NCBI GenBank assembly: GCA_047495785.1
Contig: JBLDXI010000001.1
Coordinates: 1,426,001-1,490,000 of the forward strand
Direction: 5' to 3'
Source of the DNA: Lepidodermella squamata
Taxonomy: Eukaryota; Animalia; Gastrotricha
DNA length: 64,000 nucleotides
Positions 12,097 to 52,756 of the stretch are shown here, one piece after another. Position numbers and translations under genes: made by a program. Below the pieces are notes generated by a model that was given only the letters and a program-made list of their open reading frames with translations, was not told the DNA's origin and made no database searches. Each line of letters opens with the position of its first letter. The first letter of the stretch is position 1.

Positions 12097-12378
12097 ATGG
12101 CCGCTTTGACTGAAAAAGAAGTGAACGATCTTTTTGTCGAATGCGACTCGAACAAGGACAAGCTTCTTGATCTGGACGAATTCGCCATTTTGGTGAGCAA
12201 AATCGAAAAAGGCGCCCACCGCTCGCGTGAAGATCTTGAAAAACTGTTCGTCGCTGTCGACACCAACAGTAAGATTATTATGAGATGACCTGAATTTGTA
12301 TTTTTACCTGCATTTTTCGTTACAGAAAACGGCCGGATTTGCATTGGAGAACTTCAAGCTCATTTCTGCAAGAAATAA
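12097..12378 (+). CDS. Small two-EF-hand Ca2+-binding protein (~74 aa)
   Basis: EF loops DSNKDKLLDLDE and DTNKNGRICIGE, the second completed across a GTAAGA..TTACAG intron (~12269-12326); stop at 12376-12378. Confidence 0.85.
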
Positions 12379-13218: not shown

Positions 13219-13619
13219 ATGGTAATTTTTCGCAAATTTTCAGAAATATCTGAAATTAATTGCTTTGTTTTTTAATTACGCAGCGCACCTTAACTGAAGA
13301 AGGTAAATATTTCAAAATTAAACAGTCTCTAATTCACTAAATTTTTCTAAATTGCAGAAGTCGCCAACCTTTTCTCGAAATGCGATGCCAACAGCGACAA
13401 GGAGTTGGATATCAACGAATTCGCTGAATTCATGAAGGAGGTCGGCGCTGCTGATATGCCGCGCGCTGACGTCGAGGCTTTCTTTCACGAGGTCGATAAA
13501 AACAGTAAGGAATTATTGACCTGAAAAATATGGCGCATTGCTAAAGCTCATTATTTTTGTTAGGTGATGGCCGAATCCAGCTTAAAGAGCTGAAAGATGC
13601 CGTTGCCAATCGCCACTAA
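13219..13619 (+). CDS. Small two-EF-hand Ca2+-binding protein, paralog (absent from ORF track)
   Basis: Exons 13219-13221 (ATG only), 13284-13302, 13358-13504, 13564-13619 give MRTLTEEEVANLFSKCDANSDKELDINEF...DKNSDGRIQLKELKDAVANRH*; last intron at the same position as in the 12097 gene. Confidence 0.8.
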
Positions 13620-20674: not shown

Positions 20675-21439
20675 TTAATTGTTTTTAATGCCATGATTGA
20701 TTGCACGATTGCCACTAGGCCCTGCAAACACATTGCCACTGAACTGGCCTAGACGCTGCTGCTGGGTATTGCCACTATTACTGCCAGCATGGTTGCTCCC
20801 GTGGTTGCCCATTCCCATGCCGCTATGGTAGCTGCCCCATTGCGAGAACATGTCACTCCAATACCCCGTGACATTAACGTTGCAAACTCGGCCGCATGCT
20901 TCAAGGCTGACAAAGTTGTTTCCAGGAGAATTCGGCTTGCAGCCAAAAAACATCTTGCACTTCTTGGTATTCGCCCGATCATAAAAGAAACGGCTCCTTG
21001 TCTTGTTCAGCTCACCAACACAGACGTCCTCAAGTCGAACATCAGTTGCGCAAACAGCTTTGTCAGGATCGGTCTCATTTTCGCTGCGTCCCCACATTCC
21101 AAAGCCCATTCCTTGGTAAAAAGAAATAGCTGATGAAAGTGATGAGCTTCTTATTCGGGAAAACTTACCCATCATTCCACCTTTCCCCCCACCCCAATTC
21201 CCCCAGTTTCCCCGATCTCCCCACATATTGGTGCCATTACCGTTATTGCCGAAGTTACCGAAATTGTTTCCCCAGGAGCGCCCGCCGTTTCTCCAGTCAC
21301 CTCCCCCAAAATTTCCCCAGGGGTTGTTGCCCGGATTGCCATTGCTGCCCTGATTACCGTTATTATTGTTATTTTGGGCAACAGAACTATTCGCGAGGTA
21401 CAAAACAGCTAATGCGAATAAGGTAACTTTGAATACCAT
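20675..21439 (-). CDS. Secreted Gly/Asn/Trp-rich protein with divergent Kunitz/BPTI domain
   Basis: Signal MVFKVTLFALAVLYLANSSVA; WGN/GN repeats; 57-nt stop-free intron GTAAGT..CCAAG (~21112-21168); RFFYDRANTKKCKMFFGC..GNNFVSLEACGRVC; 3' end slightly uncertain. Confidence 0.8.
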   Translation of the reverse strand: MVFKVTLFALAVLYLANSSVAQNNNNNGNQGSNGNPGNNPWGNFGGGDWRNGGRSWGNNFGNFGNNGNGTNMWGDRGNWGNWGGGKGGMMGKFSRIRSSSLSSAISFYQGMGFGMWGRSENETDPDKAVCATDVRLEDVCVGELNKTRSRFFYDRANTKKCKMFFGCKPNSPGNNFVSLEACGRVCNVNVTGYWSDMFSQWGSYHSGMGMGNHGSNHAGSNSGNTQQQRLGQFSGNVFAGPSGNRAINHGIKNN

Positions 21440-22554
21440 GTTACTTCTCGTGCTATTTGTCTTGGAAAAATGCAGACAGACGAACTGATAAAGGTACATG
21501 TTTCTCGAGGTGACATCAGCCTCTTGCTTGGTTCCTTAATGGGCATGCGAGGGTTGAAGATCACTTCGCTGACGTCGCAGTAATTGCACTGCTAATGAGG
21601 TAAAAGCCTCAGACAAAAAAAGCCCACGCAAGACGTTCAGCAAAACCTCGTTTTACTTTCATTATCATGTCTCGATAATTGTTCGAAAAGTCCAGTAATT
21701 CATCTCATAAGAATAGAAATTTCACAAACTTGAAATGATGCTATTTACAAAAGTTGTTAATAAATAACTGTAAAATCAACCAGATTTAAATTCAGAAGAG
21801 TAATTCGAAGACATAAATATGACAATAATGCAATCGATTATTTTATAGTTCATTTGTAAAATAGATGCACATAATTATATCGAGAGATAAACACATAATT
21901 TTGCTAGAATCGTTTCCTGTACAGTTAGTCATTCGATTTGGCGTTCCTTGATTCACGGATGTCGTCGACCTCGACTGAAGCTTGCGTATTTCCCCGCATA
22001 GTCTCATTTTTCCTTGCGCATCGAGGATTCGTTCCTTCCCGATTGTTTCATGTATAAGCCCACAACCGCGACCAAAACAAAGATTAAACAGTCATCGATT
22101 ATATAGAAAATGTACAGTATTTACAGACCGGCAATATGAAAGGTCAACATTTATCTCAATGATAAGACAAGATATTTCAGTGTTTCAGTTGATCTGCATG
22201 CAGCGGCGGTATTATTCGCGGATCAGTTTCAATGGTGCTTGTAATTTTTTGTCTCTAATTCGGCACGTTTGCGTATAATAGGATTATAGCTTGACAACAG
22301 ACAACAGATCAAGCAAAGAAAGCGATGAATTCTACTGAGTCATAACGTGGCTTGCTCGCTTGACAATGCCGATCAAGCGAAGCTCATCGCACTCAGCACC
22401 GGGTCAACATCTAAAATCGTTCTCCGATGAGTTATTTATCCGTGTTTTTGGTTAGTTCCACAGAATGAGAAAAGATCTAGTAGTGGCTCAAACGGAAAGT
22501 GAAATGTAAGGACACAATTGAGATTCGTATATAGGTATCAGTTATATTTACAGC

Positions 22555-25500
22555 CTATTTGTTTTTGCCGTCATGCATATTTTCCTGGGAGTTGACTCGT
22601 TGAATCGACCCGGCGCCTTGGTTCACAAGTTTTGGCCGCGTATTTTGGCGTTGCAGTTTGTGGTTCACTTTTGAGCCTATCGCATAGTCATCGTTTACGT
22701 TTGTATCAACGTGTTCCCGGTGGCGAGCTCGCAAGGACGTTACAGACGCTGAAAGCGAATTTGCAGCCCGCGGCGATGGCTCAGTCGCTGCATTCCTCCG
22801 GCAGCCTGCTGCCGCTAATTTGAACAACGCGTCTACCGGGAAGAATATTATCAGTTGGTACCACAGGAATTGGCCACAGCCCACGCCCAAGCAGATGAGC
22901 CATTGTTGCCACGTGAGCGGCACTGTCATGAATACATCGCCGGCTACCTGGATAATGACCACATGGAGGCCGAATTCAATCGCCCAGATAATGATGAAAT
23001 AGATGTTTTTATGCAAACTGGCGAAAATCCATCGCTCGCCATGAAGGCCTCGAGCGTTGAATTGATTCGCCAGCGTCATCATGACGAAAACGTTGAAAAT
23101 GATTGTGAAATGCACATTAGGACATTCAGCATCTTTGTCACTCATGTTATCAACCGGCGATCTGCATTGGCCGGTCGCTGTCTGGAACTTGGCTTCAGGG
23201 CATTGCATGGCGACATCAAAAGTGAAGATATCATTGCCAGCGTAAAGGAAAGTGAAAAGAACGATGAGCTGATAAATAGAGCTGCCCAGGATGAAACGCC
23301 ACATCATTGGTGAGACAACAGGCGAATCTCGTTGATGCGGAGGTCTTTGCAGTAGCTGTTCCGTCGGGGCGTCAGTGGCAAGAGCTAGCGAGGCCAATGT
23401 ATCCATGATCAAGTTAACCCACAGCATTTGAATAGCTTTCAACGGGCTATGTTTGATAAGAACAGCTCCAAGGAAGGCCAGCAATACTGCTACAACGTTG
23501 ACAGTCATCTGGAACTGGATGAATTTGCAAACACTGTCATATACGTTACGACCCCACATCACAGCCTTGACAATGCTTGAGAAGTTGTCGTCAGTTATGA
23601 TAATATCGCAGGCTTCTTTCGCAACATCAGTGCCAGCAATACCCATGGCGAAACCAACATCCGCCCGCTTCAAGGCAGGGGCATCGTTTGTGCCATCACC
23701 AGTGACAGCCACGACCTCGCGAGCAGTGCCAACGCGGCTGTTGATGATACCATTTACCAGGGTGTACTTGTCAGTGGGGCTAGAACGAGCCAGCACCCGC
23801 AGATTCGGCCAAATTTTGTCGAATTTCGCCTGGTCACATTTGTCATCTACCATAACCATCTGGTTAAACTGACGGCCCTCAATGATAAGAGCATTTTTAT
23901 CTCCAGGGACCAAAATACCACACTTTTGGGCAATCGAGCGAGCTGTGTTGATGTTATCTCCAGTGACCATTCTAACAGTAATACCAGCCGTACGGCACAA
24001 ACGGATGGCTTCAGGTACTTCAGGTCGGACGGGATCTTCAATACCACAAATACTGATAAGGGTCAGGTCTTTTAGAAGTTCCTCATCATTGTTCCAATTA
24101 GGATCTGCGCTGAATTTGCGGAAGGCTACGACTAAAGTTCGCAGACCATCACTTGCCATGCCTTCGATGGTGGCTTCCATGTCCTGACGCATTTCGCCCG
24201 GAATCGGCTTGGAAGCGCCTTGCACATCCACGAATTGAGTGCATCGCTCAAGCAGACGCTCGGAGGCGCCCTTGACATAGAAGTAGATGCCATCGTTCTT
24301 CTTCAAGCACGTGGCCATGAACTTTCGAGCTGAATTGAAAGTGAACAGCTTGTAGAATGCTGACTCAGGATTCTTCTGGCGGACTTCTTCAGGCTTAACC
24401 CCGAACCGCATGAGGTAATAGAGAAGCGCACACTCCGTTTTGTTGCCATTTTGAATCGGCAGACCAGTCGGTGTTGACGGAGCTTGCACGATAGATGTGT
24501 AGCCGGTGTTGACAGCAATGCCCTCAGAGAGCAATTCAATCATGACGGGGCTGCAATCAGCTTTTGTCGGATGTTGGTTGACTACTCGGAATGACTTTGT
24601 ATCGGCTTGAACTGAACCCGAGCCGTGTTCCCATAAGGTACCACCTAAGAAACTACGAACGCATGTCATGCGGTTGGTGGTCAGGGTTCCTGTTTTATCT
24701 GAGCAAATCGTTGTAGCGCTGCCCATGGTTTCAGTCGAATCAATATGCCGCACCATGTTGTTGTCTGCTAACATCTTTCGCACAGAAAAGGCCAGTGCCA
24801 AAGTGACGGCAAGTGGCAAACCCTCTGGAATGGCAACGACGAGTACTGTGATACCGACGATCAAGTATTTGATCATGTAAAGCCAGTAAGCATGGCTCCA
24901 GCCTTTCTTTGGCAGTCGATCAGCCAAGAAACGGATGATGAGAATGACGGCAGTAGCAATACCAAAGGCCATACCAATTTTACCAATCAACTCGGCAAGG
25001 TCTGTCAGTTTCTCTTGCAGAATCGAACGATGCTTTGACGGGGTTTTCTCCTTCTTTCCAGCCTTTCCCTCTTCAGCCGCTCCAGAACCGTCCGTTCCAG
25101 CGCTGTTAGGTTTGGCCTCACTCTTATCGTCATCGTCTTTCTCTTCATCGGCACCAGCCATAAGAGTGAAAATGATACCGGCCTGTGAATTGGGACCGAC
25201 GGCAGCAACTAGCATTCGGCCACTGCCCTCAACAACGTGCGTGCCAGAGAGCATGAAAGGATCGCCTGTGACTGACTTGGCAACCTGGTCGGACTCGCCA
25301 GTGAGCGAAGATTCGTCCGTTCTCAAGTCAGCTGCTGTTATCAAGATGCCGTCAGCTGGTAACAAATCGCCGTATTTTACCATTGCCACGTCGCCAACGA
25401 CCAATTCAGCGACAGGTATCGATGTGACCTGGCCGTTTCTTATCACGTTGGCCATGTGTGCGGAATTAATTTTATTCTGCAACTTTCGGAACTCTCGCTC

Positions 25501-26186
25501 CTTACTGTAGTCCATGCCTGAACCGATGAAAACGACAAGAACTACAGCGAAGAGAATAGTGACACTCTCAAGCCATTCCAAATGATGGCCGCAGCCACTA
25601 GTACTCGTCGATGTTGTCACATTAGGTGCAATTGTGGAATACAAAGGACTGCCACTAGCAACTGGCCCTGCTTTTGTTACATTCTGGGATGATGCATCAT
25701 CGTCGTCCTCGGCGGGGAATTGAATAAAGGAGATGCCGAGGGAGACGACGGCTGCAACTGTTAGAATAATCAGCAGTGGATCTTGAATGGCGTCGAGGAC
25801 GAATCTCCAAAATGGTTTCGATTTCTTAGGAGGGATAGAGTTGACGCCGAAAACTCGCCGCCGTTTTTCAAGCTCTTCATGCCCCTCAGAAAGACCCTGA
25901 AATGGAATCAACTTAGGAATCGGTACTTGCGAGTAAAGTAAATTATTACCGATTCGACGTTAGATTTGACTAAACTGGCAAGGTTATTTATGTTCTGGTA
26001 CCGATTTTGGAGCTCTGTTTGGGCTTCGTGGCCACGGAACTCCATGAGCGTGCGAAGTTCGCGAAGTGTTGTGCCGTAGTACTTGGCCTCCGCCGGGTCG
26101 ACAGCAGTGTTGATGACCACATCTTTGCCTTTGCTTTTTCCACTCTGCTGGCGTCCGGAACTTGAGTTCGACCCATTGGCAATCAT
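22555..26186 (-). CDS. PMCA: Plasma-membrane-type Ca2+-transporting P2B ATPase, paralog 1
   Basis: [63 protein letters not shown]; single coding intron 25897-25949. Confidence 0.95.
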
Positions 26187-29100
26187 CACCTCGCTTAAAC
26201 TAGACAAAGAAAAACAATTGAAGCGATTAGTTCTAGAATCCAACTGCTAATTAGGTTAAAATTAAACAGATTGTCTCACAAAGCAGTTGAGTATAAATTA
26301 TCGAAAATGTCTCATTAATGGGGATGGTATCGAGGGTCATTGACGCTATGTTGTTATAATCGATACTTTGTGAGGTGTTATTTTGAACGGAAGATAGCGT
26401 CGAGTGTCATGATTAGAAAAAACACGAATTTAATGATGATTACTCACAAGAAGAGGTAATATTATATTGATTAGCGGCAGCAAGCGCAAGCGGCAAAAAA
26501 CAGCGACATTTCTCCCGCGCATCATCGCCATCGCGCGCAGTGATTATTCGAGAGTGAGGCGCTGCGCTTCCGCGTCTCATCACTTGGCGGAGATCACGCG
26601 CGCGTCAGGAAACGCATGCGCACAGAGATTGAAAAAAAGAATGCTACTTAATGCGATGGTGCTAATGATTTTTAATCTCCAGCACGTTGTTTTTTTCGCT
26701 GCTGCTAGCCGCCGTCGTGTAAGAAGACACCCTATACCTCGACATCAGCTCTTGATGATTAGCCGTAAGCGTTAATGCAGGCAAGGTGGGAAAAAAACGA
26801 CACTCAATCGTGATTGTACCTGCGTTACAGTTAAAAGTCTCGGCAAGGGACAAGGCCAAATTGTTAGAGTATTTTATCATGAAGCGTGATTGTTAGCAGC
26901 TTGGTTAGCGGTTAAAGAATGAACTTGACTGGAAAATTACCCTTGCTCATCATTTGCAGGTTCGACGCGGTTGGTATTGGTACTAAGTTCCTTTTTCTTC
27001 CCCTTCGACGCCATTGTAAGATCAAGGGGTCAAGGCACACTATAGCGTAAATTGGTAGCAAATTAAATCTTAGAAAATAGCGAAAAATTGGCTAATACGA
27101 TGGGCTAAAAACCAAAGAAGCAACCGTGAAGTCTTCCTTAGAACGCATTGAGAATAGGAAATAAAGCCATGAACTTGACTAGAGATAAAATTTGAGGTGG
27201 ATCGTACGTTTCGCAGATAAATGGAAAGGCTTAATTCGCTAAGTGGACCGCAAAAAAGCGGTATTTCAGATTGAGCTCATATTCCTATATGTCACGGTTG
27301 CTATAAAAATGAAGGTCCTACAAAACGTCAATCATTGAGGTGGTTTTCGAAGGCGGCTCATAGAAGCAAAAAATAGTTGCCAGGGTTGCATGTATTCGCG
27401 TGCTTAAATAAAGTCATTTAATGCAGCATCACACTGCTCGTTTTTTGAAAGAAGCAAAGCGATTGAATAGCTATATGATATCATATAATATGAGACTAAA
27501 TGCGTATTCAAATCTTGGGGATTACAGCGCGGATCGAAAAGATGCGCTCGGAAAGCGGCGGCGATGTGGCGCGCGAAAAAAGTGCCCTCGTGGCGCACGA
27601 CGACACAGGTGCGTATAATATGAATTTTCGCTAATGCAAAAGGTATCTTTTTTCAGCGCAGCGGCGTCAAAAGAGCGCGAGCCCAGACGGTCGCTCGATA
27701 CATACGAAACTGAATAAGAATTAGAAAAAATAATAATAATTGATTAAACCTACAGTAATACTAGCCGCATAGCTGGCGAAATCTTCTAATAGCTAGAAAA
27801 TACAGCAATGTTTTCGGATGCGACGCGCGCAATTTTTTGCGAGCGCACTTGCGGATTTTTTGACAAAACAGCATGATTGCGCGAAGCGACGCTGCGCTTC
27901 AAGAGACGTCTCGTTTTAAGCATTATTAAACTTTAAACCTAGACTCGAGATGGATAGATAGCGACCTGGGCGAGTAGAAAGAATAATATTATTACTTTTC
28001 GAAGCGATTCGCATACAAAAATGATGCGTTTCCTTTCTGAACACAAAATGCTCAGACCGTATTTAATAGTATAATGCGTCCAAATATCGACGTTTTTTCA
28101 GCCCGTTGCGAAAGAGATAGCGCGGGAGCCGTGCGGCAGGTGGAGTGAATATTGATTGGGGCGACGCAACTTCGAACACATCACTAATAGCAACAGGTCG
28201 ATTTGTTGTTGTTATTACGAAATAACTTTATTATTAATACGCCTGCCCAGCAACTGAAGCCTAAGCCGATTTTCTCCCACTGCCGCACACGGCAACGTGC
28301 CATGGTGAAGGGGGATTTTTTACGAAGTCAAAGAGACAATGCACGCGCGATGAGTTGAACTCGATCGATGCTTGCCTATCTATCAAACACCCTGGATGTA
28401 TTTTAAGACGATCCGTCGTTCTCTAGGCAACCGCTGCTAAGCTAATGACGATGACAAAAACACGGTGCATTTAACGAAAATTACAGCTATTAGGTGAACT
28501 TGCTAGAACTTTCATAGCTATGAATGTATGTATCACGATCTATTACTATGACCGCGTGCTAAATTGGAGTGAAAACACCTATTGTTAAAAATGAATTTCC
28601 GCGCGCAACTTCCCGAACACGAGCAAAGAACCGGATTTACGTTTGCTTTCACATTTTTCTATCGCAATCTCTTGAAAACTACGGCCAAGTTCACACGTGT
28701 ATTTTAAGAAATATTGAACACATCGATTCGTATTAGCCGTTCACTCGCGGCTTTTTTTACCTTCTTATGCTATTGCTGGCCTGTGACGAATCATTATTCG
28801 AATTCACGTGCAGATACATAATATCGCCGGCTGTTCAGTCTTGCCAAACTTAGCGTACTTCTTTTCATTAAAACAAATTCGCATAAAAAAATGGAAATAG
28901 CGGTGATTCAATTATTAATGGTTGCTAAGCATCTGGAAGGAAACGTGAAAATACAGAAAAGGCGCCGGTAAGAACCGTCCCACCCGGGCCTTATGTCCCG
29001 TTTTGTAGGACTTTAACATGAATGAAATAAACTGGTTGCCTAACAACAAGCTCTCGCTATATAGTGTGAAAAAGGCTCTTTCTACGTCATAAAAATATGA

Positions 29101-30817
29101 GCTATTTAGTGAAAATCTCTGAGAACAAAATGTAAATGATCGAAAGTTAAAAGCATAAAGGGTGACAGGTGTTAAGCGGAAGAGAGGCGCCCGGTGAAAT
29201 TTGCAAGTTTTTATCCTAAAAAAAATAGCGAAGATATATTCCACCGCAATTATATCGTGTGTGCTATTAGCTTGATAACTTATAAATCTAGACAGCAACA
29301 ACAGTACTCGTATTAATGATGTTGTAATTCGGAATGATGCGCGAAGCACGTGCATTAAAATGTTTCGTTCAGAGACGCTCTCTGAGATCGATGATGTGTG
29401 AAGTTGCTCAATTTTTTTTTACGTGTCGTTCAGATTTACCTTGCTACTGATTGTCTATTAGCCGCCATGACGCAGTTGACGCGGTGTCAAGTTGCTACAT
29501 CATCATCGTGTCACGGATCAAATTACACAAAAAAATATTCGCGCATGTTTTTCCTTACGAGATTTCGAAGGGTTAGTTGAGAAGCGTGTGAGGTGATCTA
29601 GGGTCTGCGAGCGGCTCGCTTCAAGATTTTATCTTGATTAGCCGACGCAACAGGAAGTTGAAAAAGAAAAAACAATGAGCTATATGAATCATCATTTCTC
29701 TGAGAGAAATAGACAGACATTCCGAGGTCAATGTCACGGTTTAATTTTCAATTTTTACCTTCGCTCTGATATACTGGTTGTGCTTGTTGCTGCAGAGGAA
29801 ACACTGGTAGTGCGAGTAGTTCGTTCGGGAAGCTGGAGGTAATCCTTATCTTCACCGATCATATCTCATTTGCGGTTATCAAAATTAATTAATTAATAAC
29901 CACTAATTAACCAATAAACCAGTTAAAATTCAAGAAGATTCTTTTATCCGGACTATTTAGTCGGCAAGTGGGATGAAGTAATTCAGCGGATATATCCATC
30001 CAAAGCTAGTGAGAGTGTAGTTTGGCATATCGAGCTACAAACGCGTCATGCCGCGGAAGTACGACTAAGGCGAAAAGCACCTGCGCAATGAGTAAATAAA
30101 AATGTGCGGCATGCAGTTGAAATAGCGAATTCTCAATAAAAAAATCTTCAAACAATGTTTTAATGATGATGGCTCGTAGCGACACTAGAAGCTAATCCGA
30201 TGAGGGCGGTTCTTTCGTTCTTTTATTGTCGCGTTGTTAAGAAGAGGCCGCTTTTATGGCACTATAAGCTGCGCAGTGAGGACATGTACTATAATGCTTG
30301 AGTTGAGCTACACCAGCCGTAGCAGAGTCCCTCTTATATCGCCGAGCGGAAGGCTCACATACAGGGTTAAAAATGGAGGTTTTGTCGAGCAAACCACCTA
30401 TCGTCTGCAGCAGCTAAATTTTGCACCTTGGCAACAATTTGCGTCACTTCGATTTTAATTGCGAATTTCATTATTTATGAGCATTAGCGCAACATACATA
30501 ACGGCTTCGTGTATAAATTGTTTTCCGTTGATATTTCGCCGTGCTTTTCTGCGTTACTATGCTGTACCAACGATTTTCGCTCTGCGATTGCGCCGGTCAT
30601 GCGATCGAATTTTTTGCTAAAAATTGATCCTTGCCAGTGAATTTGATGCGAGCGTGGGGAAAGCCGGCGGGAGCCGAAGTGCATCAAACACCTGGGCACA
30701 CCGCAGCTCCCAACTTGATCGCCAAGATATAGATTTTTCGACTCGCATGAAATATATATGAGAGGAGCGCGCATTGACGTCATTCGCTCACAATAACCAT
30801 CGCGTGTATTTTTTATA

Positions 30818-38360: not shown

Positions 38361-41300
38361 ATGAGCGCAACGTAAGTTTAACTTACTTTCCCCGCCAAAC
38401 TCGTCAATTTTTCAATGTATCTCAGGAACAACATCGACGCCTCGGCAGAAGCGGGGGGCTATGGCGTTACGGTCAGAGACCTCCGCGGTTTGATGGAGTT
38501 CCGAGGCCATGAAGCGCTTACAGAACTTCAAAGCCGCTTCCAAAGTGTTTTTAACCTTGCATCGTTACTGAAAACCAACCCTGAAACGGTAATTTAAAAG
38601 GTTACTTGCTCACTTTATTCATGCCTTGTATATAGGGCATCAGAGAATCTACCGAGGAAATCGAAAAGCGGAGAAGAGTGTTCGGCCCAAATTCAATTCC
38701 GCCGAAGAAAAATAAGCCGTTTTGGAGATTTGTTTGGGATGCAATTCAAGACCCCCTCCTCATCATTTTGACAGTCTCGGCTGCAGTGTCTCTCGGCATA
38801 TCCTTCATTCCGATGCCAAAGGATGAAGAAGAAGATGATGTAGTAACTACTACGCTGTCGCCTATTGTCGGAATAGGATGGAATGCTACAACTACAATGA
38901 TTAATCGAAATTTAACAACAACGCTAGCCGTACATCATGGCTGTGAGCACAGTTTGGAATGGATTGAAAGTCTGTCCATTCTGTTTGCGGTCGGCTTGGT
39001 GGTTTTCATCGGCTCTGGTATGGACTACAGTAAGGAACAAGAATTCCGCAAACTTCAATCGAAAATCAACTCAGCCCATATGGCTAATACTATGCGAAAT
39101 GGCGAGGTCACAACAATTCCAGTCGCTGAGTTGGTCGTTGGCGATGTTTGCCTGGTAAAATACGGAGATCTGCTGCCGGCGGATGGTATCATTATCAATT
39201 CCAGTGATTTACGCACGGATGAATCATCTCTAACTGGAGAATCTGATCAGGTCGCTAAATCCGCTAGTACTGATCCTTTCCTGCTATCTGGAACGCATGT
39301 TGTCGAAGGGAGTGGGCGAATGCTTGTTACTGCAGTTGGCGTCAACTCTCAGGCCGGAATAATTTTTGTCCTATTAGGACAAAGCGATGGCAACAATGAA
39401 AACAACAAAAGCGAGGCCAAACCTGCCGACGCATCTGGTTCGGCGGAGGAAGGTAAAGTGGAGGACGAAGCGAAGCAGCAAGAAGCTTCAAAACACCGCT
39501 CGATCCTTCAAGAAAAGTTGACAAATCTCGCGAAACTTATCGGCCAGATCGGCCTGGGTTTCGGCATTGGAACAGCCGTTATTTTAATCATCCGATTTCT
39601 CGCTGAAAGAATTCCGAAAAGCGGCTGGCATAACTCGTATTGGCTGTACATCGTCAAGTACATCATTGTCGGTATCACCGTTCTAGTCATCGCCATCCCA
39701 GAGGGTCTCCCCCTAGCAGTAACACTCGCTCTGGCTTTTTCAGTGCGAAAAATGTTGGCGGATAACAACATGGTCCGCCACATCGATTCGACCGAGACGA
39801 TGGGCAGTGCTACTACAATCTGTTCAGATAAAACAGGAACCCTAACCACAAACAGAATGACCTGTGTTCGCAGCTTACTTGGTGGGAATCTATACGAACA
39901 CGGCTCTGGCAACGAACAGCAAGATCGGCAACATGTCAGAGTTGTCAATGATCACCCTGAGAAATCGAAATTCAGCAGCAAATTTGTCGAGCTTTTGTCT
40001 GAAGCAATTGCAGTGAATACAGGCTACACGTCAATGGTCGAAGCTCCGTCTACTCCTACCGGTCTTCCTATTCAAAAGGGCAACAAGACTGAGTGCGCCC
40101 TTCTGTACTACCTCATGCGTTTCGGCATCAAGCCGGAGGATGTTAGATCAAAAAATCCTGAATCAAGTTTTCATAAACTCTTCACATTCAACTCGGCTCG
40201 AAAATTCATGGCCACGTGTTTGAAAAAACCGAACGGACATATCCATTTCTATGTGAAAGGAGCGTCTGAGCGTTTATTGGCTCGATGCTCTAAATACCTT
40301 GATGATGAAGGAAATGTTCATGAAATTCCAGAAGAGTTGAGGCATGACATGGATTCGATCATCGAAGAAATGGCTGGAGATGGGCTAAGAACACTCGTCG
40401 TTGCATATCGTGAACATGAGAGCGACCCAAACTGGGATGAAGAGGAAGCTCTCCTAAGTGAACTTACGCTTCTGGCGATTTGTGGTATCGAAGACCCGGT
40501 TCGTCCTGAAGTGCCCGATGCTATAAGGCTATGTCGCTTGGCTGGCATCACCGTGCGAATGGTTACAGGTGACAACATCAACACAGCTAGATCAATAGCG
40601 CAGAAGTGCGGCATTCTAACGCCGGGAGATCGCCAGGCTTTGGTTATAGAAGGCCGTCAATTTAACGAAATGGTCCTGGATAGTGAAGGCAATGTTAACC
40701 AGGCCCGTTTCGACAAGGTCTGGCCTAATCTTAGAGTCTTGGCGCGATCTAGCCCGACCGACAAATACACCCTGGTAAATGGAATCATTCAAAGCAGAGC
40801 TGGCAAGCAACGCGAAGTCGTAGCTGTAACAGGTTTGCATTAAGTTCTGTTTGTTTAATTTTTAGATCCACCCTAATTCTACAGGTGACGGCACAAATGA
40901 TGCTCCCGCCTTGAAGCGAGCTGATGTTGGATTTGCCATGGGTATCGCCGGTACTGACGTGGCGAAGGAGGCTTGCGATATCATCATCACCGACGACAAT
41001 TTCTCTAGTATCGTCAAGGCTGTAATGTGGGGCCGCAATGTTTACGACAGCGTTTGCAAGTTCATCCAGTTCCAGCTCACCGTCAATGTCGTCGCTGTCC
41101 TGTTGGCTTTCCTCGGGGCCATTTTCATTAAACAAAGCCCACTTAAGGCTATCCAACTGCTTTGGGTCAACCTTATCATGGACACCCTGGCGTCACTTTC
41201 CTTGGCAACCGATGCGCCGACTGAACAGCTGCTGAAGCGTCCACCTCAACGTAGATCAAACCCTGTTATCTCGCTGACAATGTGGCGTTTCATCCTTGGC

Positions 41301-42062
41301 GAATCTTTATACCAGCTTGGCGTATCGTTCATGTTCGTTTTTGCCGGACCCCAGTTTTTCCCGTACGACTCGGCGAAGCAGTGCCCTGAAAAGCGACTCC
41401 AGGACGAAAACGGCCGCTGTTTATCGCCCGTGGATTCTCGAATGCGAGTCTCGGACTACGAATGTCCGAACGTGAATTTCACGATTGTTTTCAACGCGTT
41501 CGTTCTAATGACCCTTGTCAACCAAATAAACGCCAGGAGTCTCCACGGTGAACGGAATGTTTTCCGTGGTCTGCATAAAAACGTTGTCTTCATTGTCGTT
41601 TGGCTGCTCGAAATTAGTCTTCATATTATTATTATCGAACTGGCTGGACCTGTTTTCGTCACGGTGCCTTTAACGTGGGCGCAGTGGCTTATATGCACCC
41701 TAGCTGGGCTTGGTCAGTTTGTTTGGTACCAATTAGTGGTATTCGTGCCTTTTGAGCAATGGATGCAAAAGCTTCTCGCCCGCTTCGGCAAGGGCGGAAA
41801 CGCTGAGGAGCCAGATGTGCGAACTCAAACAGCTTCGGTCACATCGCTCCGGCTGCGTCATCACGAGCATATCAACAAGGACGTTCAAGATAACTACGCA
41901 GTCGCTTCTATTGTCCACCGAAAAATCGCAAGTGTGCGTCAAGCAACGCCGCCGTCGTTGTCGCGCCACGAACACAACGCTACGGCTAACAGCAACGTCC
42001 AGGTCACCGGGCATCATAATCCATCGTTCGAAAACGAAGACGTGGCAACTACTCGCTTATAG
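38361..42062 (+). CDS. PMCA: Plasma-membrane-type Ca2+-transporting P2B ATPase, paralog 2
   Basis: Exons 38361-38371, 38426-38588, 38636-40832, 40885-42062; all catalytic motifs present (TGES, PEGL, DKTGT, KGASE, TG|DGTND); ends ATTRL*. Confidence 0.95.
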
Positions 42063-42501: not shown

Positions 42502-45500
42502 TCATTGTCTGTCAACAATCTTCAGCTTTTCGAAAAATTCCGAAACCGACTCGGCTTTGTACGTGCTCCTTAATTTAATTAAAAAATTGCATCAAAATTT
42601 CATAAAAATAAATTGTTTAGGCTCACCTGACGCGGCGGGCCACGCGCTCTTCTCGCTCGAACTCCGCAGCCTTGGCCGATGCCTTTTCGATGAGGTTAAG
42701 CGGCAAACCCGCCAAACGGGCTGCATTGAAGCCGTACGACCTTGGACAAGCCCCAGCCACAAGTTGGTAGAGGAAGGTGATAGTTTCAATGCCACCCTCG
42801 TTCATCTTATCATTATCCACCTTACAAGCCATGTGGCATAGACTGACGCCCTTCGAGCACCGAGAACTCTCCGACGCAATAGTCGAAACCAGCAGGTGAT
42901 AATGGGTCGAAAAAATCGTTCGACACCCGATTTTTCCGGCCAGAAATTCCAAAACAGCAGCGGCCACTGAAAGACCGTCATAAGTCGCTGTCCCGCGGCC
43001 TAATTCGTCTAGCAAGACCAGCGAATGTTCGGTTGCGCGTTGCAAAATCACGGCAGTCTCGGCCAATTCAACGTAGAAGGTACTCTCACCAGCTAGAATG
43101 CGATCAGACGCGCCCATTCGCGTGAAAATTCGGTCAACAGGTGATAACCGCATTTTCGCAGCCGGGACACGGCAGCCGAGATGGGCCAAAACCACTAGAA
43201 GCCCGACTTGTCGCATTAAGGTGGATTTACCGCCCATATTCGGCCCGGTCAAAATCAGCGATGACGCGTTTGAGTTGTAGTTGATAAACGTGTCATTTGC
43301 AATGAGGGACGAACCAATTTTGGGCAGTAAACACGGGTGAGCACCACGTTCAATCGCGATGAATGGTTTGCCGCCGTTCCCGTCATTCGCGTCCACGAAT
43401 TCAGGCACGCAGTAATCAGCATTTGCCGAGTAGTTTGACAACGCCATCAAGCAGTCCAGGGTCGCTAAACAGCGGACAACTTTCTGCCACTGCGGGAAAT
43501 ATTCGTCGAATTTAGCGAAAGTAGCCCGGATCGAGTCACGAAGGGCTAATTCACGCCGCTCTTCCGCGCTTTGCAAGTCAGCGAATAGCCCATCGATCTC
43601 AGTGGTTCGGTAACGCCGGAAGCCTTTCCGTTTTGAAGAGAAGACGAATTCACTGGAAACTGACTTATCTTCAGGAATCTCGAGCTGGTAGCGATTTTTC
43701 GCCGTGCCGAAATATTCGCATTTTGCTACTCGCAGCTCTTTTTTGTAGTTCAGCCGCAAATCTTCGAGTTCCTGTTGAATCTGCTGGATTTCACGGCATG
43801 CTTTGTCATAAGCGGGGCAGAGTCCGATTTTCGGTGTAATTTTGCCGGTCTTCTTCGCCTCGTCCAGGTCGAACAGCTTTTCAAGCTCGTTCAATACTGG
43901 CTCGATATTCGGTACGAGGCCGCCTTCGCTCTCCAGAAGAGTGCATTTCTTAAGAAGTTCCGATGAAAAACCGTCAGAATCGGCAGCTGACTTGGCGAAT
44001 AGCTTAAAAATCTGAACGGCAACACGGAAACCTGAAAAGAACAAATAGCAAAGTTATACAGCAATTTTCCAAATTGAGGCTGTTGGCAAGCAAATGGGAC
44101 TAATATTACAATTTGAGAAAAATTCAAAATTTCTTAACTTCAATTCGTACATATGGTAAAAAATGTGGTTAAATCTTTTCGACTGCGACCCAGGCTCCTT
44201 CACTCATGGCGCTTCTTTTTACAATAGCTCCTAAAGCCGAAGGCAATGGTGATCGATACTACATTCGGAACGAACAAAGCTGGGTACAAATTGATCCTCT
44301 TCCGTTTCACCAACGCCGACAATGGCAAAACTGCAGTTGGCACAATAACAATGCTGCTGGATGAAACTGATGAGAGCGTGGGAGAAGCCTTCAAACTCTT
44401 CAAGTGCCTACATGGCACGAGCGTCTGCTTGGTCGACAAAGAACTCAAGCAAATAAGCCTTCTCGAAGATATCTTTATCTTTGGATGCCTGGTTTAGTTG
44501 AGCTTGCGGCACGTCAACTGCGCTGAGGTTGAGGTAAAAGAGAGAATGTACGCTTGCGTTCTTGCCATGTCAAATTCGCATGAGAAATCCAAATTCGATG
44601 ATGCTCACCGAATGTTCATTGAAGCTGCAACAGACATTGAACTTCGCATCGACAAGAAGCATGCCAGCCTTCTTGACTTCTGTGGAAATTTGGGTGAAAG
44701 TGCACAGAAGCTTGCTGGAAACTGGAAACAATGGGCAATGACACGACAAATCGAGCTGAAGGAACTTTTGGATCGTGGAAAGTAAAATCATAGTATCAGA
44801 AACACCCATTGGACGACTCTTTGCCGGCTAAATCAATGGATGAAGATCTTCGCGAACAACTAAGGGATAGATACCGGTTGCCGATGGAAGAGGAGCGGCT
44901 GAAGGATCACCTTGAGCCATGTCCAAGGCAATCACTCGGCACCGATTGCGGCGTTTTCGCAGCTGCCTGCTTACTTCTACTCATCGATGGCGGCGATCCA
45001 GGTGTAACCTACTTCAAACCCTCTACGGACATGCGAAATCACCTCGAAAGTCAGTATGCAACCGTCTTTCCGTCATCGAAAAAACGCGGCCAAATACCGG
45101 AGCCCGAAGTCATAATCCTTCGCTGAACTGAAATCTAGTACTCTTAAAGATACTTAATGATAATACCGAATATTGATCGGGAAAAAGGTTTGAATGAGAA
45201 CAAAATGAGAATAAAAATCATTCAGTTTCATTTTCTGAAAATATCTAAGAATAGTCTAAGAATAGCCATTCCAATTATTATATTAGCATTACCTTTCATA
45301 GTAGAAACGAGTTCCTCAATTCGCTTTTTACGATAGCTGTCCTCTTCGAACATGACAGCCCGGCTATCAGGGTGGCCAGTTGATTTAGATGGATGGCCGA
45401 ATGTGTGCATTTTATTCAACGAGCGGTCCAAATCCGGCAGTTTTGACATCAGCTTAGACACATCCTTCGACAGGCCCAGGTCATGCCCGAGTTCAGAAAT

Positions 45501-48102
45501 CGCTGCCTGGCGGTCGGCGATATCTTGAACTCGAGTTAACGGCGAACTGATCCATTCTTTGAGTTGGCGGCGGCCGAATTCGCTGGAGCAAGAGTCCAAC
45601 AGCTCGAATAGCGTGCCTTCCAACGTTCCAGTCGAGCTGTTCTCCATGAGATCCAAGTTTCGAAGAGTGATTGAGTCCAAAACAACACGAGAATTGCGAA
45701 TTTCAGAGCACTTTTTCCGATCGCTGTCATCCATCCGGTTTTCACTGCTATCAAGCGGAACATCAGGCGGAGTGTAGTTGACAAATTGTCGCAGCGATAA
45801 AACGGTTTCGTCGATCAAGCATTTTCGAAGGTAGGCAATCAAAGCGCCCAAAGCTCCGATGCATTGGAAGTACTTCTCATCAGGCCGCGGAACAGCTGAA
45901 GCAGGGTCGCTCAGCATTTCGGCAATCGCAGCTGGCCATTCGATTTCCGGCGCTTCCGGGTCTTTGCGGAAGTAGTCCGATTTCGCGAGGTCTTTAATAG
46001 TCGCCTCAGCGTTCCACGCAATGCCAGTCGCGCTTAAATTATCACGAAGGGCTGATGACGCAGCTGTAACCAGGACTCGTTGCGTTTCCTCGGAAATGCG
46101 CTTCCGGTCAGTGATAACTTGAGCGGCCTTATTAGCGGCGATAACTGTCCGCAAGCTGCTTCGAGCTCGGTCATCCGTGAACTGGGACAAATGAACAGTT
46201 CCGATAGTAGTATCAACAAAAGCGATGCCGAATATGATTTTGTCCGAATCAGGGACAGGGCGTTCGGAGACCGCCATCAAACAGCCTGTGCTCGAGTCAC
46301 CCAAGCCACCGCACATCATATCAGGGGTTCTAGTACCCGCTAGGAAAAGACTTGAAAATCATCGGATTGCAAGTAGATTAATGTAATTACCTGAAATGAT
46401 TTGACAAAGCTCTCGCCGCACGACTTTGTCCTTGTCAGCGGCGGGGCTCTTGCTTCCGAGTGATTTAGCCTCCTTTGCTCGCTCAGCCGCGGCTGCTGGC
46501 GTTTCGGTTTGCTCAACTCGGCCGACTTTGAAGCCTCTTTGGACCAATTGATCGGCATAGCGGGGATACGCCATTTCCGGAAACCCAGCATGAGCGACTT
46601 CACCCTAGAACGAAATCGGAATTTTTCGGAAAAATTAAGGAGGAGCAGGACATACCCTCATGAAAATTAGGCCGAGCTCATTGACGGCAGTTACAGCATC
46701 CATGTGATACAACTCGTAGAACTTTCCAAGCTGGGAACAAAAATCGAAATTAAAACACAAAAATCAAAATCCGAACTAATCCACCTTAAAACACAATACA
46801 GTGTCGAAATTTTTCGATTTCATGATCCACCACTGTTTCAAAGCCGGCGTTTGTTTGGCTAGGAAAGTTTCCGGCACATACAGGGTTGTGGCATCATAAT
46901 CTGGATCATCAGGCCTCCGGCGCATAGCATCGCTACAAAATTCGAAAAATGTTAAAAATCACTACCTAAATTGTTGGTCTAACCAAAGGTTTTCAGGCCG
47001 AAGGAAAGAGTAGTCTTTGCTACTGGCGTGGGGGTATTGCGATGGATCGCGCTCTCCGACGTCGTCGTTACTGACCGAGGGCGACTGAAACGCAGTGAGT
47101 TTATCCTTCGTCCTGCCACTCGTCGGAGTCGTAGTCGCCGATCTCGAACTAGCGGCACTTATCGATCGACTGGGCGTAGTTGAAACTTTGCCTGACGCCT
47201 TCTTCGAAGATGCCTTCCGCTTTTGCTTACTACCCCGACCGCTATCGTCGTCACTTTCGTCGTCAAAATCAGCCTCTTCTTCATCGTCGTCTTCATCTTC
47301 GTCCAACTCGTCGTCGTCGACAATGAAGCTATCATCCTCTTCCTCACTTTCGGCCTCTTCATCACCGTCGTCGATTACACTGCGGCGCTGGCGCTTTCCG
47401 CCTTTTTTAGCCGATGAAGGGGCGCGACGTTTCTGGGCCTTCTTCGAACTTTTCTCCTCAACTTCCATCACATCGTCATCATCATCGTCAGACATGACCA
47501 CAACCCGCTTTTTGCCTGAAATAGATTTGTCATTAATTTCACTCTTTTTCTCAGATAATCACACGAAAAAGCAAGCGGGATAGTTTGAAAATAAAAAACT
47601 GAAGAAGCAAGCGGCAAACTCAAGCTGAAAAATCACACATTTGATAAATACCTCGCTCAATTTTGACCAATTATTCCGCAAAATATCTCAATTTTAATTT
47701 TTAAATCTAGAAAATTTAAGATGGATGACCTTTGGTGACTGTTGAAACATCTTCAGGGTCGATTTCTTCAACTTCGTCGTCATCTTCATCCTTCAGTTTC
47801 TTTTTCGAGCTCTTTTTATTGTCAGATACGGAAAATCGAACGCGACGATCAGCTGAGCCGGGCGTTTGAAGCTCTTGTTTCTTCAAACCACCCACCCGAA
47901 GCGGCGTGCCGACGCTCTGTTTGTTTTCCTTGAGCGGGTCAACACTAGCTGAAATTTTCGACTCAGGCGAACCAACTTGTTTATCCTCGCCGGTGGTTTT
48001 CAGCGGCGTTTTGTTTGCAGGCGAGTTAGCCGGCTTCCCGAAGAACGAAAACAGCGTCTTCTGCTGCGGACCAGGGGTGCTAGCGCCCTTCTTCGCAGAC
48101 AT
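42502..48102 (-). CDS. MSH6: DNA mismatch repair protein MSH6
   Basis: PIP box QKTLFSFF, acidic N-terminal region, FK|[25 protein letters not shown], Walker [47 protein letters not shown]; multiple introns. Confidence 0.95.
44246..45126 (+). mobile_element. Decayed Mutator-like (MULE) transposase fragment plus Ulp1/C48 protease fragment, antisense in MSH6 intron 44032-45292
   Basis: [28 protein letters not shown] (MULE-domain-like); [13 protein letters not shown] (C48 Q-x4-DCG motif); interrupted by stops. Confidence 0.65.
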
Positions 48103-48432: not shown

Positions 48433-50740
48433 TCAAGATTGAGGCGGCTGGGGCGAAGTACCGAGCACGAAATCAAGGACTGATGAGACGAATTTTCGTT
48501 TTTCGTCCGTGCTAGGCCGCCGGTTGGCCGCGTTCTGAAGGGCTAGACAAGCTTCTGGTACTGAAATGTGATGATGCGAATGTTTTCGTGCAGAAATAAA
48601 TGGATGAGCAAGAAGGTCATTGGCAGTTGGTCTCGATTTAGGATTTTTGTTCAGACACGCTCGAATCACTGATATCATTTGCTGCTCGCTATTCAGCACT
48701 TGCTCGCAAGATTCGTGAAGCATTTCTCGGGGCGGGCATGGAATTTCGAATTCCGTCGGCCATGCAGCTACGGTTGAAATTTTCGAGATTGCCGTATCCA
48801 AATGGCCAATCGGTGAAAGACCAAAGGCGAGCTCGTGCAATATGCAACCAAGGGCCCAAATATCGCCGGCCGGGGACGTTCGCCGATCGTGAAGCCGCTC
48901 CGGGCTCATGTAGTCCAGGGTTCCGCACAACTTATCGAATTCCAGCTGACTAGTCGCATCTGTTGCCAGCTGCCTTGAAACCCCAAAATCAATCAATTTC
49001 AGCCGGCAGCCGTTTGTGAACAGAAAATTGCTGGGTTTGAGATCGTTATGAACTATGCCGCGAGAATGCAGCGTTGAGATTGCATGGGCCATTTGTCGAA
49101 AAACCGAACGGCAAAGGTCGGGATCGGCGATGAAGGCAGGCATGGGCGGCGGAGCAGTTGACAGCGACCGCATCCAGGAGGCTAAATCGGCATTTCCAAG
49201 CTCCATCAAAATCATCAGAGCCGAGTTCTTGAAAACAAAAATACGAAAATGACACAAAAAACAACAAAATAAACGAAGAAAACAAAAATGCAGATCGGGT
49301 AAATTCTAACACCTACCTTAAAATTTTTACAACAAAAACATTTTTTAGCGGTAATATTGAAATAAATTATTGTATGACAGTAAAAAAGTGAAAAAATCAA
49401 TGTTCCAGGATATCAGAACGAAGTAAAATAAAAAAGGGCTTCAAAGTCTACCATCGGAAAATTTCCCTTTTCAAAATTAATCAATCATCCACCATTATTT
49501 TGTTATTTTCACACACACACTGCCCTCCTTCGATGCTTATTGGAGTTATTCCGAGATGAGGAGTTTTGCTAATAAATTGGACAATTCAACTTTCCAACAT
49601 TTCAAACTTGATAAACCCCACTATTCCCTTGTTAACGGTCATGATGTGGTATAAAATATTATAACTCAGTTCGACCCGTACCTTTTTCCGAACAGCAGCA
49701 ACTTCGTATACTCGAACGACACACCCGGTATCAGCCAAACTGCGCAGCATATCAGCTTCACGCATCGCATCATTAAGCTGACTTTCTGTGCCAACTCTCA
49801 CTTGCTTCAGCGCAAATAGCTTTCCATCACTTTCTGCAGCAACAGCGAAAACGTTCGAAAATCCACCACTGCCAACCAGACGAAGCACTCGATACGTCTT
49901 CGCACCCATGCGCAGTTGGCTAAACATGACGGAAGACGACTGGTTTTCATGATGAATTTGCTCCTCGTTTGCAGCTTGTTGAGCTGGAGGATGGTTGAAA
50001 TGAACTGGTTGATGCGCAGGAGGAGGCGGTAGAGGAATCGGTTCCCGATGTTGCTCAACCAATTTCGGCTTTTCGTGGCCTTGGTGGCTCGAATAAACTG
50101 CACCTTGACTTTTATTAAGCTGGCTCGATGCGTGCGAGTGGTTTTGAGCGTTTCGAATAACAGCATTCTCTTTATCAAAAATCAACGCTGATTTCGGTCG
50201 CGGGACAGTATTGCCATGATTTTTAGGTGGGGATAGTGGCATCAAATTAGGCTTCGAAGCACTGCTAGGCGGCATGTTGCCATGATGTAGTTGCCTACTC
50301 TCAACATTTCGCTGCTGAATTTCTTCTTGGTATGACGAAATCGGTTTGAAAATGTTAGAATTAGGCAAAGGAGCAGTGTGATTTTCATCCGAGGTTTTTG
50401 CCAGATCTTTCGGACTATCGCTTATAAAACCGGAATCCTTGTTGTGAAAAGCCATTCCAGGGACTCGGGGCAGATGGTGACTCGGCAAATTTGCATTGGG
50501 TCTGGCGGATTGCTGGTAATTCGAATCCGGGCTCTCATTTTCGGACGGCGATTGACTTATAGGGAAGAGCGAGAGAGTTGATGATGAATAAGCTGTTCTG
50601 GGAGCGACGTGATGATGCGGTTCCAGGGCACTCACGGAGGCATGGTGTTGCAGGGGGTGATCACGGGGCGATTCGGACTGGGCCGTATCAAGCGCCTTGA
50701 TCCGGTCAAGAAGTCTTTCCCGACGAGCAGCCAGGGTTAT
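48433..50740 (-). CDS. TTK: Mps1/TTK dual-specificity spindle-checkpoint kinase (start codon uncertain)
   Basis: GSGGFSNVF, FALKQV, LMELGNADL, IVHNDLKPSNFL, LKLIDFG, GTLDYMSPE, DIWALGCIL, RPTANDLLAHPF; ~450-nt intron within the kinase domain. Confidence 0.8.
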
Positions 50741-50867
50741 AACTACTTAATTCAACACATAACTAAAAATAAAACAAAATCATTCAATTTTTCGTCAATT
50801 TATTAAGGTGTACATATAGGTATTTAAACTTTTTTCGTGAGCGCAACAAAATAAATGTGGGGCTTTA

Positions 50868-52192
50868 TCACTTTTTCTTAGCACCACCCTTCGCCGCGCC
50901 GCCTTTCGCGCCACCCTTGGGTGCTTTGGCAACGACAATTTTTTGTTTCTTCTCCTGTTTCGGGTCGATTTGGTACATGACAGTCGGCTGGTCAAGTTGG
51001 AACAGCAGCTTGTCATACAAATTTTCCGGCAGCTTTTCGCTCGACTCGGCCGGGTAATAAGTCGGGAAGGGCGGCGGGTTCTTTCTATCAATGGCTGAGT
51101 GGTGCTTCCAGAACGTTGAATCCATCACTCGGACATACGAATGAATCGGCCCGGGTACGGCCGCCCCGTGCACGTAGATCACATTATAGGCGGTATTGAC
51201 CCGCCAAACTTTGAGACCACGCTGAGTCCGCCACTGCACGCCCATGTGGCCAGGCATACGAATGCCCTTCCAGACGTGACCCCACATCGAAGGCGCGGCT
51301 AATGAGCCGAGACGACGATGCGACTTGGTACAGCCGTGACTGGCCGGACCGCCGGACATGTTCCAACGCTTCATAACACCCTGAAAACCGTGGCCAATCG
51401 TCTTAGCCTGGACATTGACGAAATCACCCGGGCGGAAATGCGAGGCGTACAGTGGCGTTCCGGGTTGAACAGCCGCGTTGGGTGTGACCAAAAAACGGGT
51501 CAATTTTCGCTTCGGAGGCACTCCTGATTCTTTGAACAGATCCAAGTAACTCGGGTTGAACATGTGAGGGTCGCATGACAGCGCGCCTACAATCTGGCAG
51601 CCATAGCCCTCGCCCCAATGGCGAGCTTTATAACGCGGACTTTTCGCAAATTCATCCGGTGGGATGTAACCGACAACGTGATTGTCCAAAACTTGCAACA
51701 TAGTAGTTATAACTCGTTCACCGGTTATCGTCCATTGAGTACAGGCGCCTAGTTTGATCGCTAGAACTCCAGTTCGAACTGTTCGGTTGTGTTCCTCCCA
51801 CTTGCCGCGCTTCCATGGCGCGTCTTTCAGCGGGGAGGTCGGCGAGACAATGGGCTGGTAAACTGCGGCAACTGCGTCGGATAGAAACTGACGATTCTCT
51901 GACGTCAAATCTTGCGTGTTATCCAACATATTCGTCTTTCGCCGACGCCACCAAGACATCGGCTTGCATGTTCGCTTCCTGTCGGCATGCCGTCTCACCC
52001 GCATTCGCACCATAGGAGCGGGCATTGCCATATCAGGCAAAATACCTCCCATTCCAAGAATGGTATTAGGCCTAGTGAAAAACAGAAGTTTAAGAAAAAA
52101 TCGAACTTATTGAACCAAGATCACCTCAGCAGGGTAGAAGGCGCCTTGAAAGCATAGCCCGTGAATACGGACGCTTTGAATATCCAAGACAT
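50868..52192 (-). CDS. MRPL3: Mitochondrial large-subunit ribosomal protein L3
   Basis: Presequence exon MSWIFKASVFTGYAFKAPSTLLR; RTGVLAIKLG, KTIGHGFQGVMKRW, PASHGCTKSHRR, MPGHMG, PPFPTY. Confidence 0.93.
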
Positions 52193-52273
52193 ATCAAGTA
52201 ACAATCTAGGGAAATCACAGTTTATTTGGCTAAAAAATAAACAATTTGTTGGATGAGCTAAGACTATCACTCC

Positions 52274-52577
52274 TCATGTCCGGATGAAGGAAGGGACTTT
52301 CTGACGTTCTTCTAACAAAACTTGTTCCCGCTGAGCTTTAGGCACGCCATTGACTTTACGAAACACAGTGCGCTATAATTTCAAAATACTAGTCAAGTAT
52401 TTGAAAAAATTACTATCTTACCTCCCAGGTTAAGCAACGAGTCAACTCTCGATCGACATCATTGCAGGCACCTGCGAAAAATCGGCCAACGCTGTGCTCT
52501 TCGTGGCACTTTTTCAGCTTCTCAATTATGACGTTGCATTCCGGCGTGTGAAGATGAGGCGATAGATTAGGATGCAT
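52274..52577 (-). CDS. CMC2: COX assembly mitochondrial protein 2 (twin CX9C), absent from ORF track
   Basis: [45 protein letters not shown]|RTVFR...FIRT*; intron ~52373-52421. Confidence 0.88.
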
Positions 52578-52756
52578 TTAAATCTCAAAAATTAATAATG
52601 TCTATAAATTTAAATAACTTGGTTAAGCACGCAAAAGCTTTACCATAAAATTGAAGCGAAGAAAATTGAACAAATCATATATAAAAAAATCACCAGCGAA
52701 ATAAGGCGGAAATGACAAAAACTTATCACTGATACGTCAGGAAAAATAGCAGTTTG

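Follow-up and report, generated by a model that had tools for sequence, protein, structure and literature searches.

How is a plasma-membrane Ca2+ ATPase (PMCA) of an animal controlled once the calmodulin-binding segment of its tail is gone? Two genes of this type, here called paralogs 1 and 2, raise the question on a 64,000-nucleotide (nt) stretch (the window; C1:1426001-1490000) of the 121-Mb genome of the animal Lepidodermella squamata, a genome with small introns. We find that both encode intact PMCA-type (P2B) Ca2+-ATPases, that the canonical calmodulin-binding domain has been lost in their clade, and that their tails share an element constrained as strongly as the catalytic core. Calmodulin-relieved autoinhibition is treated as a hallmark of animal plasma-membrane Ca2+ pumps, and a survey placed a calmodulin site in every metazoan P2B pump examined, tying its origin to multicellularity (PMC10132250). 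The account that we consider probable is that an ancient P2B duplicate pair, within a divergent clade that includes a metagenomic ortholog, lost the calmodulin autoinhibitory domain, is most likely not switched by calmodulin, and carries a new tail element that would serve regulation or docking.

The pumps have an intact catalytic core. All searches, alignments and fold predictions were made on single exons, with the first 79 residues of paralog 1 outside the model and paralog 2 entered as separate exon rows. The closest solved relatives of the paralogs are human PMCA2 (1017 bits) and PMCA1 (1002 bits), with plant ACA8 at 600 and SERCA at ~280 bits. The Pfam models E1-E2_ATPase, Cation_ATPase, Hydrolase and Cation_ATPase_C all match, giving the full P-type ATPase architecture, and AlphaFold2, working from a 62-row alignment, models the main-exon pump of paralog 1 well (pTM 0.76). 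The catalytic motifs DKTGT, TGES, TGDN and GDGTND can be read in the translations of both paralogs, as can the residues of the single Ca2+ site, AIPEGLP (Glu, transmembrane helix (TM) 4) and WVNLIMDT (Asn and Asp, TM6). The preliminary description of this locus had called PEGL, NLIMD and DKTGT intact, and translation confirms this for both copies and adds TGES. Both N-terminal exons, of 79 and 58 amino acids, are animal-like and free of Trp, that of paralog 1 resembling animal PMCA N-termini; the long N-terminal autoinhibitory and calmodulin-binding extension of plant ACA-type pumps is not present in them. An acidic, charged insert before TM3 (EEKDDDDK ... KKEKTPSKHRS), the mark of holozoan clade II, is present. 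With one exception, this TM2-TM3 insert occurs only in holozoan pumps bearing a calmodulin-binding domain (Steger and Palmgren, PMC10132250). Its retention in the paralogs suggests that the site was lost secondarily.

What sets the paralogs apart lies mainly beyond the last helix. Canonical metazoan PMCAs (human PMCA1-4; PDB 6A69 and 9GSD; a copy on contig 54 of the same genome) are ~50% identical to them over the whole pump and share the N-terminus, the acidic TM2-TM3 insert, the catalytic and Ca2+-site residues and the juxtamembrane helix after TM10. Unlike these, the paralogs have neither the acidic stretch and W-anchored calmodulin helix (PF12424) nor the a/b alternative tail exons; they carry a different conserved tail element and a longer TM1-TM2 loop with N-glycosylation sequons. 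PF12424, the Pfam model of the PMCA calmodulin-binding tail (GQILW[FIV]RGLxR[IL]Q), matches neither whole protein at E<=0.1 and neither isolated tail at E<=10, with same-genome controls at 28.4 bits (calmodulin-site exon) and 17.2 bits (a-type exon). Scanned in six frames at E<=10, the whole 121-Mb genome has no match in the window, two in a single contig 54 gene and one, at chance level (E=6), on contig 4. By generic criteria for calmodulin sites (a Trp anchor, net positive charge and an amphipathic 15-30-mer; PMC10132250), the tails of paralog 1 and the ortholog contain no Trp and no basic amphipathic 18-mer (charge >=+3, >=6 hydrophobic), whereas canonical controls score clearly. The earlier observation that neither tail has the PMCA calmodulin-binding segment is therefore borne out by the model's misses on proteins, tails and the genome window. 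AlphaFold2 gives residues 1036-1113 of paralog 1 a per-residue confidence (pLDDT) of 30-39 and places a short helix of low confidence on each of TSLRARH and GSKVNHK; the model of the main-exon product was aimed at docking of the tail onto the cytosolic domains, and the tail reached only those values. The prediction fits a tail that, past the juxtamembrane helix, may be disordered with short linear motifs.

The loss does not extend to the organism. A canonical PMCA gene lies at C54:3180813-3187766 (L001:1339-1557, L001:2325-2810 and L002:1444-1758), with an exon that ends in the calmodulin site ...RGQILWIRGLNRLQHQ. Downstream of it are two exons like the b-type (IRVARAF...KRSVHSLQSLRS) and a-type (MRVVNAF...SSSVTSFGSLHS) alternatives of vertebrates. 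The b-type tail (TVLEDLEEKRSVHSLQSLRS) is nearly identical to those of Lingula and a sandfly, a likeness that points to a protostome; the arrangement as a whole is reminiscent of alternative splicing at site C, here in an invertebrate. Since this canonical gene is present, the organism keeps calmodulin control of Ca2+ extrusion and has given it up only in the paralog clade. On sequence evidence, the paralogs are a documented exception to the presence of a calmodulin site in all investigated metazoan P2B pumps (PMC10132250).

In place of the lost domain stands a conserved element whose signature, in a four-row alignment, reads ASVTSLRxR, then VxDxYA[IV]xxxVxxK, then RQxTxPxL. It opens with a cluster of four Ser/Thr within six positions followed by Arg (SASVTSLRxR). 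The preliminary description had proposed a motif shared by the two tails, and that motif is real, under selection and correctly placed (within 22555-22800, and at 41832-41924 in paralog 2), but the 'HxEH' part of it is not kept by the ortholog, and the RQxTxPxL segment, conserved in all, had been missed. Between the paralogs the 31-amino-acid motif is 58% identical with a nonsynonymous divergence (pN) of 0.25, against 24-31% and 0.55-0.62 in the tail flanks and 74% and 0.17 in the core. Between paralog 1 and the ortholog, the extended element (45 codons) is 78% identical with a pN of 0.139, equal to that of the catalytic core (81%, 0.14), while the extreme C-terminus falls to 42% and 0.32. A second haplotype differs from the reference at 21 single-nucleotide positions in the last 144 codons of paralog 1, and 17 of these are synonymous, including all three within the motif (three public runs). 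The motif is thus under purifying selection between paralogs, orthologs and haplotypes. Synonymous sites are saturated in both the paralog 1/2 and the paralog 1/ortholog comparison, so the duplication is old and the organism of the ortholog distant. Look-alikes of the motif region in the ESM Atlas reached noise level only (0.77).

The clade is narrow. The paralog 1 ortholog has its full tail and sits on an ENA metagenome scaffold (L016; variants L017 and P0271-P0273), to which a 409-amino-acid fragment of 78% identity led in a search of 1.84 billion protein representatives. That search returned no full-length relative above 54% identity; the best protein matches, at ~50%, come from Lingula, Schistosoma, a sandfly, Seison and vertebrates. 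A tail-only word search of 5.8 billion proteins with a 400-amino-acid C-terminal query recovered only the ortholog cluster, and the same search with a 1118-amino-acid query recovered nothing, which is partly an artefact of its length window. A scan of JGI metagenomes with the tail alignment found no relatives. A tail profile run over the whole genome has no matches besides paralogs 1 and 2, and among ~280 PMCAs sampled across eukaryotes a motif profile finds only the ortholog cluster. In a quick tree, which does not resolve the deep placement of the clade, the three sequences group as (paralog 2, (paralog 1, ortholog)) with 100% support on a long stem, which places the duplication before the two organisms diverged.

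Paralog 1 is transcribed and spliced. Public run X1 behaves as RNA because it holds both the joint across the 53-nt intron, which DNA run X2 lacks, and a spliced 5' leader exon from 3.5 kb upstream. Its contigs are colinear through the paralog 1 stop codon into the 3' untranslated region (3'UTR) with no splice joint in the tail, and their depth drops to about zero over 21173-21554, beyond that region.

We propose that, after the juxtamembrane helix, the tail would be an intrinsically disordered stretch carrying a clade-specific short linear motif, composed of the Ser/Thr cluster with its Arg, a helix-like Y-A-[IV]-x3-V-x2-K-[LIM] piece and RQxTxPxL. Canonical switching by Ca2+/calmodulin would most likely not apply to the pumps; the element would most likely act as a phosphorylation-dependent regulatory site, or as a docking site for a partner or for sorting; and calmodulin-gated extrusion would be left to the canonical contig 54 PMCA. 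What we infer is that the pumps are independent of calmodulin and that the motif plays this part. The suggestion in the preliminary description that the pumps are either constitutively active or regulated by another partner appears reasonable. Its candidate partners, the products of two small paralogous two-EF-hand genes (12097-12288 and ~13350-13524, + strand; one canonical loop each by pattern), fare worse: the genes lie 9-10 kb beyond where paralog 1 ends on its 3' side, other open reading frames (ORFs), one of them with a Kunitz domain, lie between, and nothing links the two genes to the pumps. We hold it as a tentative and somewhat doubtful possibility that the tail element is a calmodulin-independent module, a phospho-switch or a site where a partner docks, through which the pump is gated or targeted, the clade having swapped Ca2+/calmodulin feedback for another control logic. 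If true, an animal PMCA clade would contradict the published generalisation on calmodulin sites in metazoan P2B pumps.

Several observations weigh against the loss of calmodulin control. The relatives found come from one organism only. The RNA evidence covers paralog 1 and was read from assembled contigs, in which rare isoforms are lost. The juxtamembrane helix of paralog 2 contains a Trp and is homologous to '...LKFLKEAGHG' of canonical pumps; a weak window of charge +3 in the same tail overlaps the motif and is not conserved in the clade. Moreover, some protist (trypanosomatid) PMCAs without a recognisable calmodulin site are still reported to be stimulated by calmodulin (PMC6884021).

The alternative that survives best, although we judge it unlikely, concerns the origin of the element: the motif would be a remnant of a conserved segment that canonical tails have after the calmodulin site, left behind when the acidic stretch and the site itself were deleted. 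The motif does resemble SVHS[LF]xSLRS of protostome b-type tails and SSSVTSFGSLH of the contig 54 a-type exon; it has the pentapeptide SVTS[LF] in common with the latter, which Pfam aligns to PF12424 positions 12-42, and with a profile of protostome and own-genome tails the three tails score above 97.6-99.2% of shuffles (p=0.008-0.024). This signal fades when the own-genome exons are left out or vertebrate tails are used (p=0.18-0.6), pairwise Smith-Waterman alignment reaches at best p ~0.03 before multiple-test correction, and BLASTP gives E=1.8. The proposed origin, at best marginal statistically, is not supported by these comparisons. Vertebrate 'a' splice variants (site C) are a related likeness, with an altered, Ser-rich and kinase-targeted tail after TM10 and a weak match (SSV.S..H), yet in them half of the calmodulin site, the first, remains and calmodulin is still bound, and the motif similarity is not significant.

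Less probable still is that the motif or the juxtamembrane helix forms a non-canonical calmodulin-binding site, leaving the pumps under calmodulin control. The calmodulin stimulation reported for trypanosomatid PMCAs without an identifiable site (PMC6884021) would offer a precedent, and in paralog 2 a 12-residue stretch next to TM10 and the 18-residue +3 window might be candidates. Against this, paralog 1 and the ortholog have neither the Trp nor any window combining charge >=+3 with >=6 hydrophobic residues, the conserved core includes acidic residues (DDY), the paralog 2 features are not conserved in the clade, and AlphaFold2 gives no confident tail helix.

It is very improbable that a canonical calmodulin-site exon exists and was missed as an alternative 3' exon, a possibility the preliminary description had itself raised. 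Vertebrate PMCAs and the canonical contig 54 gene do use alternative tail exons. Yet no such exon with a calmodulin site emerged from the six-frame PF12424 scan, from the RNA-like contigs that run unspliced past the paralog 1 stop, or from the close downstream surroundings, where a convergent MutS-type gene ends 560 nt from the stop of paralog 2; the in-frame tail is moreover itself under purifying selection. That the genes are decaying copies whose tails are alike through recent duplication, for which nothing speaks beyond their being linked paralogs, is refuted by synonymous saturation with a core pN of 0.17, intact ORFs, transcription and splicing of paralog 1 and an ortholog in a distant organism.

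Our preferred reading, a secondary loss of calmodulin control in a P2B duplicate pair, has partial parallels elsewhere. Fungal PMC1 is a PMCA-type pump that is not known to have a recognisable calmodulin site. The trypanosomatid pumps Tca1 and TbPMC2 (PMC6884021) likewise have no identifiable calmodulin-binding domain. Both differ from the paralogs in belonging to unicellular lineages and in being often organellar, whereas the loss described here is secondary and within an animal. Most unicellular protists lack a recognisable site without evidence of loss, fungi not being surveyed (PMC10132250). Another parallel is Arabidopsis ACA12, and probably ACA13, a P2B copy that escapes calmodulin control beside regulated ones in the same genome; constitutive pumping at a low level has been proposed as its contribution (Limonta et al. 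2014, cited in PMC5920303). ACA12 differs from the paralogs in that the plant regulatory domain is N-terminal, calmodulin is still bound, and deregulation came about by point changes and not by domain loss. The precedent makes clear that regulated P2B pumps and a deregulated paralog can exist side by side. The paralogs are a modest but concrete exception and no new kind of system. They offer a natural test case for the role of a PMCA without calmodulin feedback, be it constitutive housekeeping extrusion or specialised secretion, and for which other tail signals can control the PMCA family.

Table 1. Features of the two pump genes, in window coordinates.
Feature	Position	Strand	Evidence
Paralog 1, non-coding 5' exon	29759..29866 (upstream end approximate)	-	106-nt loose end, at 26201, of an RNA-like contig exactly matches 29761-29790
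Paralog 1, 5' intron, 3559 nt	29758..26200	-	GT after 29759, AG at 26201-26200; leads to the ATG exon
Paralog 1, start-codon exon (ATG 26186-26184), 79 codons	25950..26199	-	sequence and translation
Paralog 1, intron, 53 nt, GT-AG	25897..25949	-	spliced joint 25895/25949 in run X1, absent from DNA run X2
Paralog 1, main coding exon, 1113 codons and stop, TM1 to C-terminus	22555..25896	-	ORF, PDB matches, Pfam domains, AlphaFold2
Paralog 1, cytosolic tail past TM10, 96 amino acids	22558..22845	-	no Trp, no PF12424 match, AlphaFold2 pLDDT <50 from exon-product residue 1036
Paralog 1, extended conserved tail element, NSLSASVTSLRAR ... DDYA ... QRQNTRPKLVNQG	22615..22761	-	alignments, pN comparison
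Paralog 1, core 31-amino-acid motif (ASVTSL...NHK)	22657-22749	-	pairwise codon comparison
Paralog 1, 3'UTR, ~850 nt	21700..22554 (end approximate)	-	X1 contigs at depth like that of coding sequence to ~21700
Paralog 2, exon 1, 58 codons	38415..38588	+	sequence
Paralog 2, exon 2, after 47-nt GT-AG intron	38636..40832	+	ORF, sequence
Paralog 2, exon 3 (TM5-TM10, tail, stop), after 52-nt GT-AG intron	40885..42062	+	ORF, sequence
Paralog 2, tail	41742-42059	+	
Paralog 2, copy of the 31-amino-acid motif	41832..41924	+	sequence, alignment

The 52-nt intron of paralog 2 splits the Gly codon of GDGTND. The two proteins end differently: paralog 2 closes with ...TTRL (42048-42062), which fits the class I PDZ-ligand pattern ([ST]-x-hydrophobic, C-terminal) like canonical b-type PMCAs, and paralog 1 with ...GKNK, which does not fit it. 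The lengthened extracellular TM1-TM2 loop is common to paralog 1 (25560-25700, - strand), paralog 2 (38800-38960, + strand) and the metagenome ortholog; it holds several N-x-T/S sequons and a conserved Cys-x-H-x-LEW piece absent from vertebrate PMCAs, and AlphaFold2 gives it a pLDDT below 50. The second haplotype of paralog 1 is ~5% different at 22612-22960 in all three public runs aligned, which indicates high heterozygosity or a collapsed allele.

A further PMCA-like gene (C1:1401910-1405327, L008, - strand) lies 21 kb upstream of the window, bringing to three the PMCA-type genes within 66 kb on contig 1. It is 55% identical, keeps DKTGT intact, and has a short, Cys-rich, basic tail (...CGCFRRFCGASSKK...) without a calmodulin site; the quick tree places the gene beside a divergent contig 24 copy and not with paralogs 1 and 2. 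Directly downstream of the paralog 1 3'UTR is an ORF with a Kunitz/BPTI domain (20675-21499, - strand), whose 3' part is covered by RNA-like contigs. Housekeeping neighbours occupy 42623-46319 and 49586-54646 on the - strand: a MutS-family gene of at least two exons, a protein-kinase fragment, ribosomal protein L3, and a PARP with WGR and regulatory domains.

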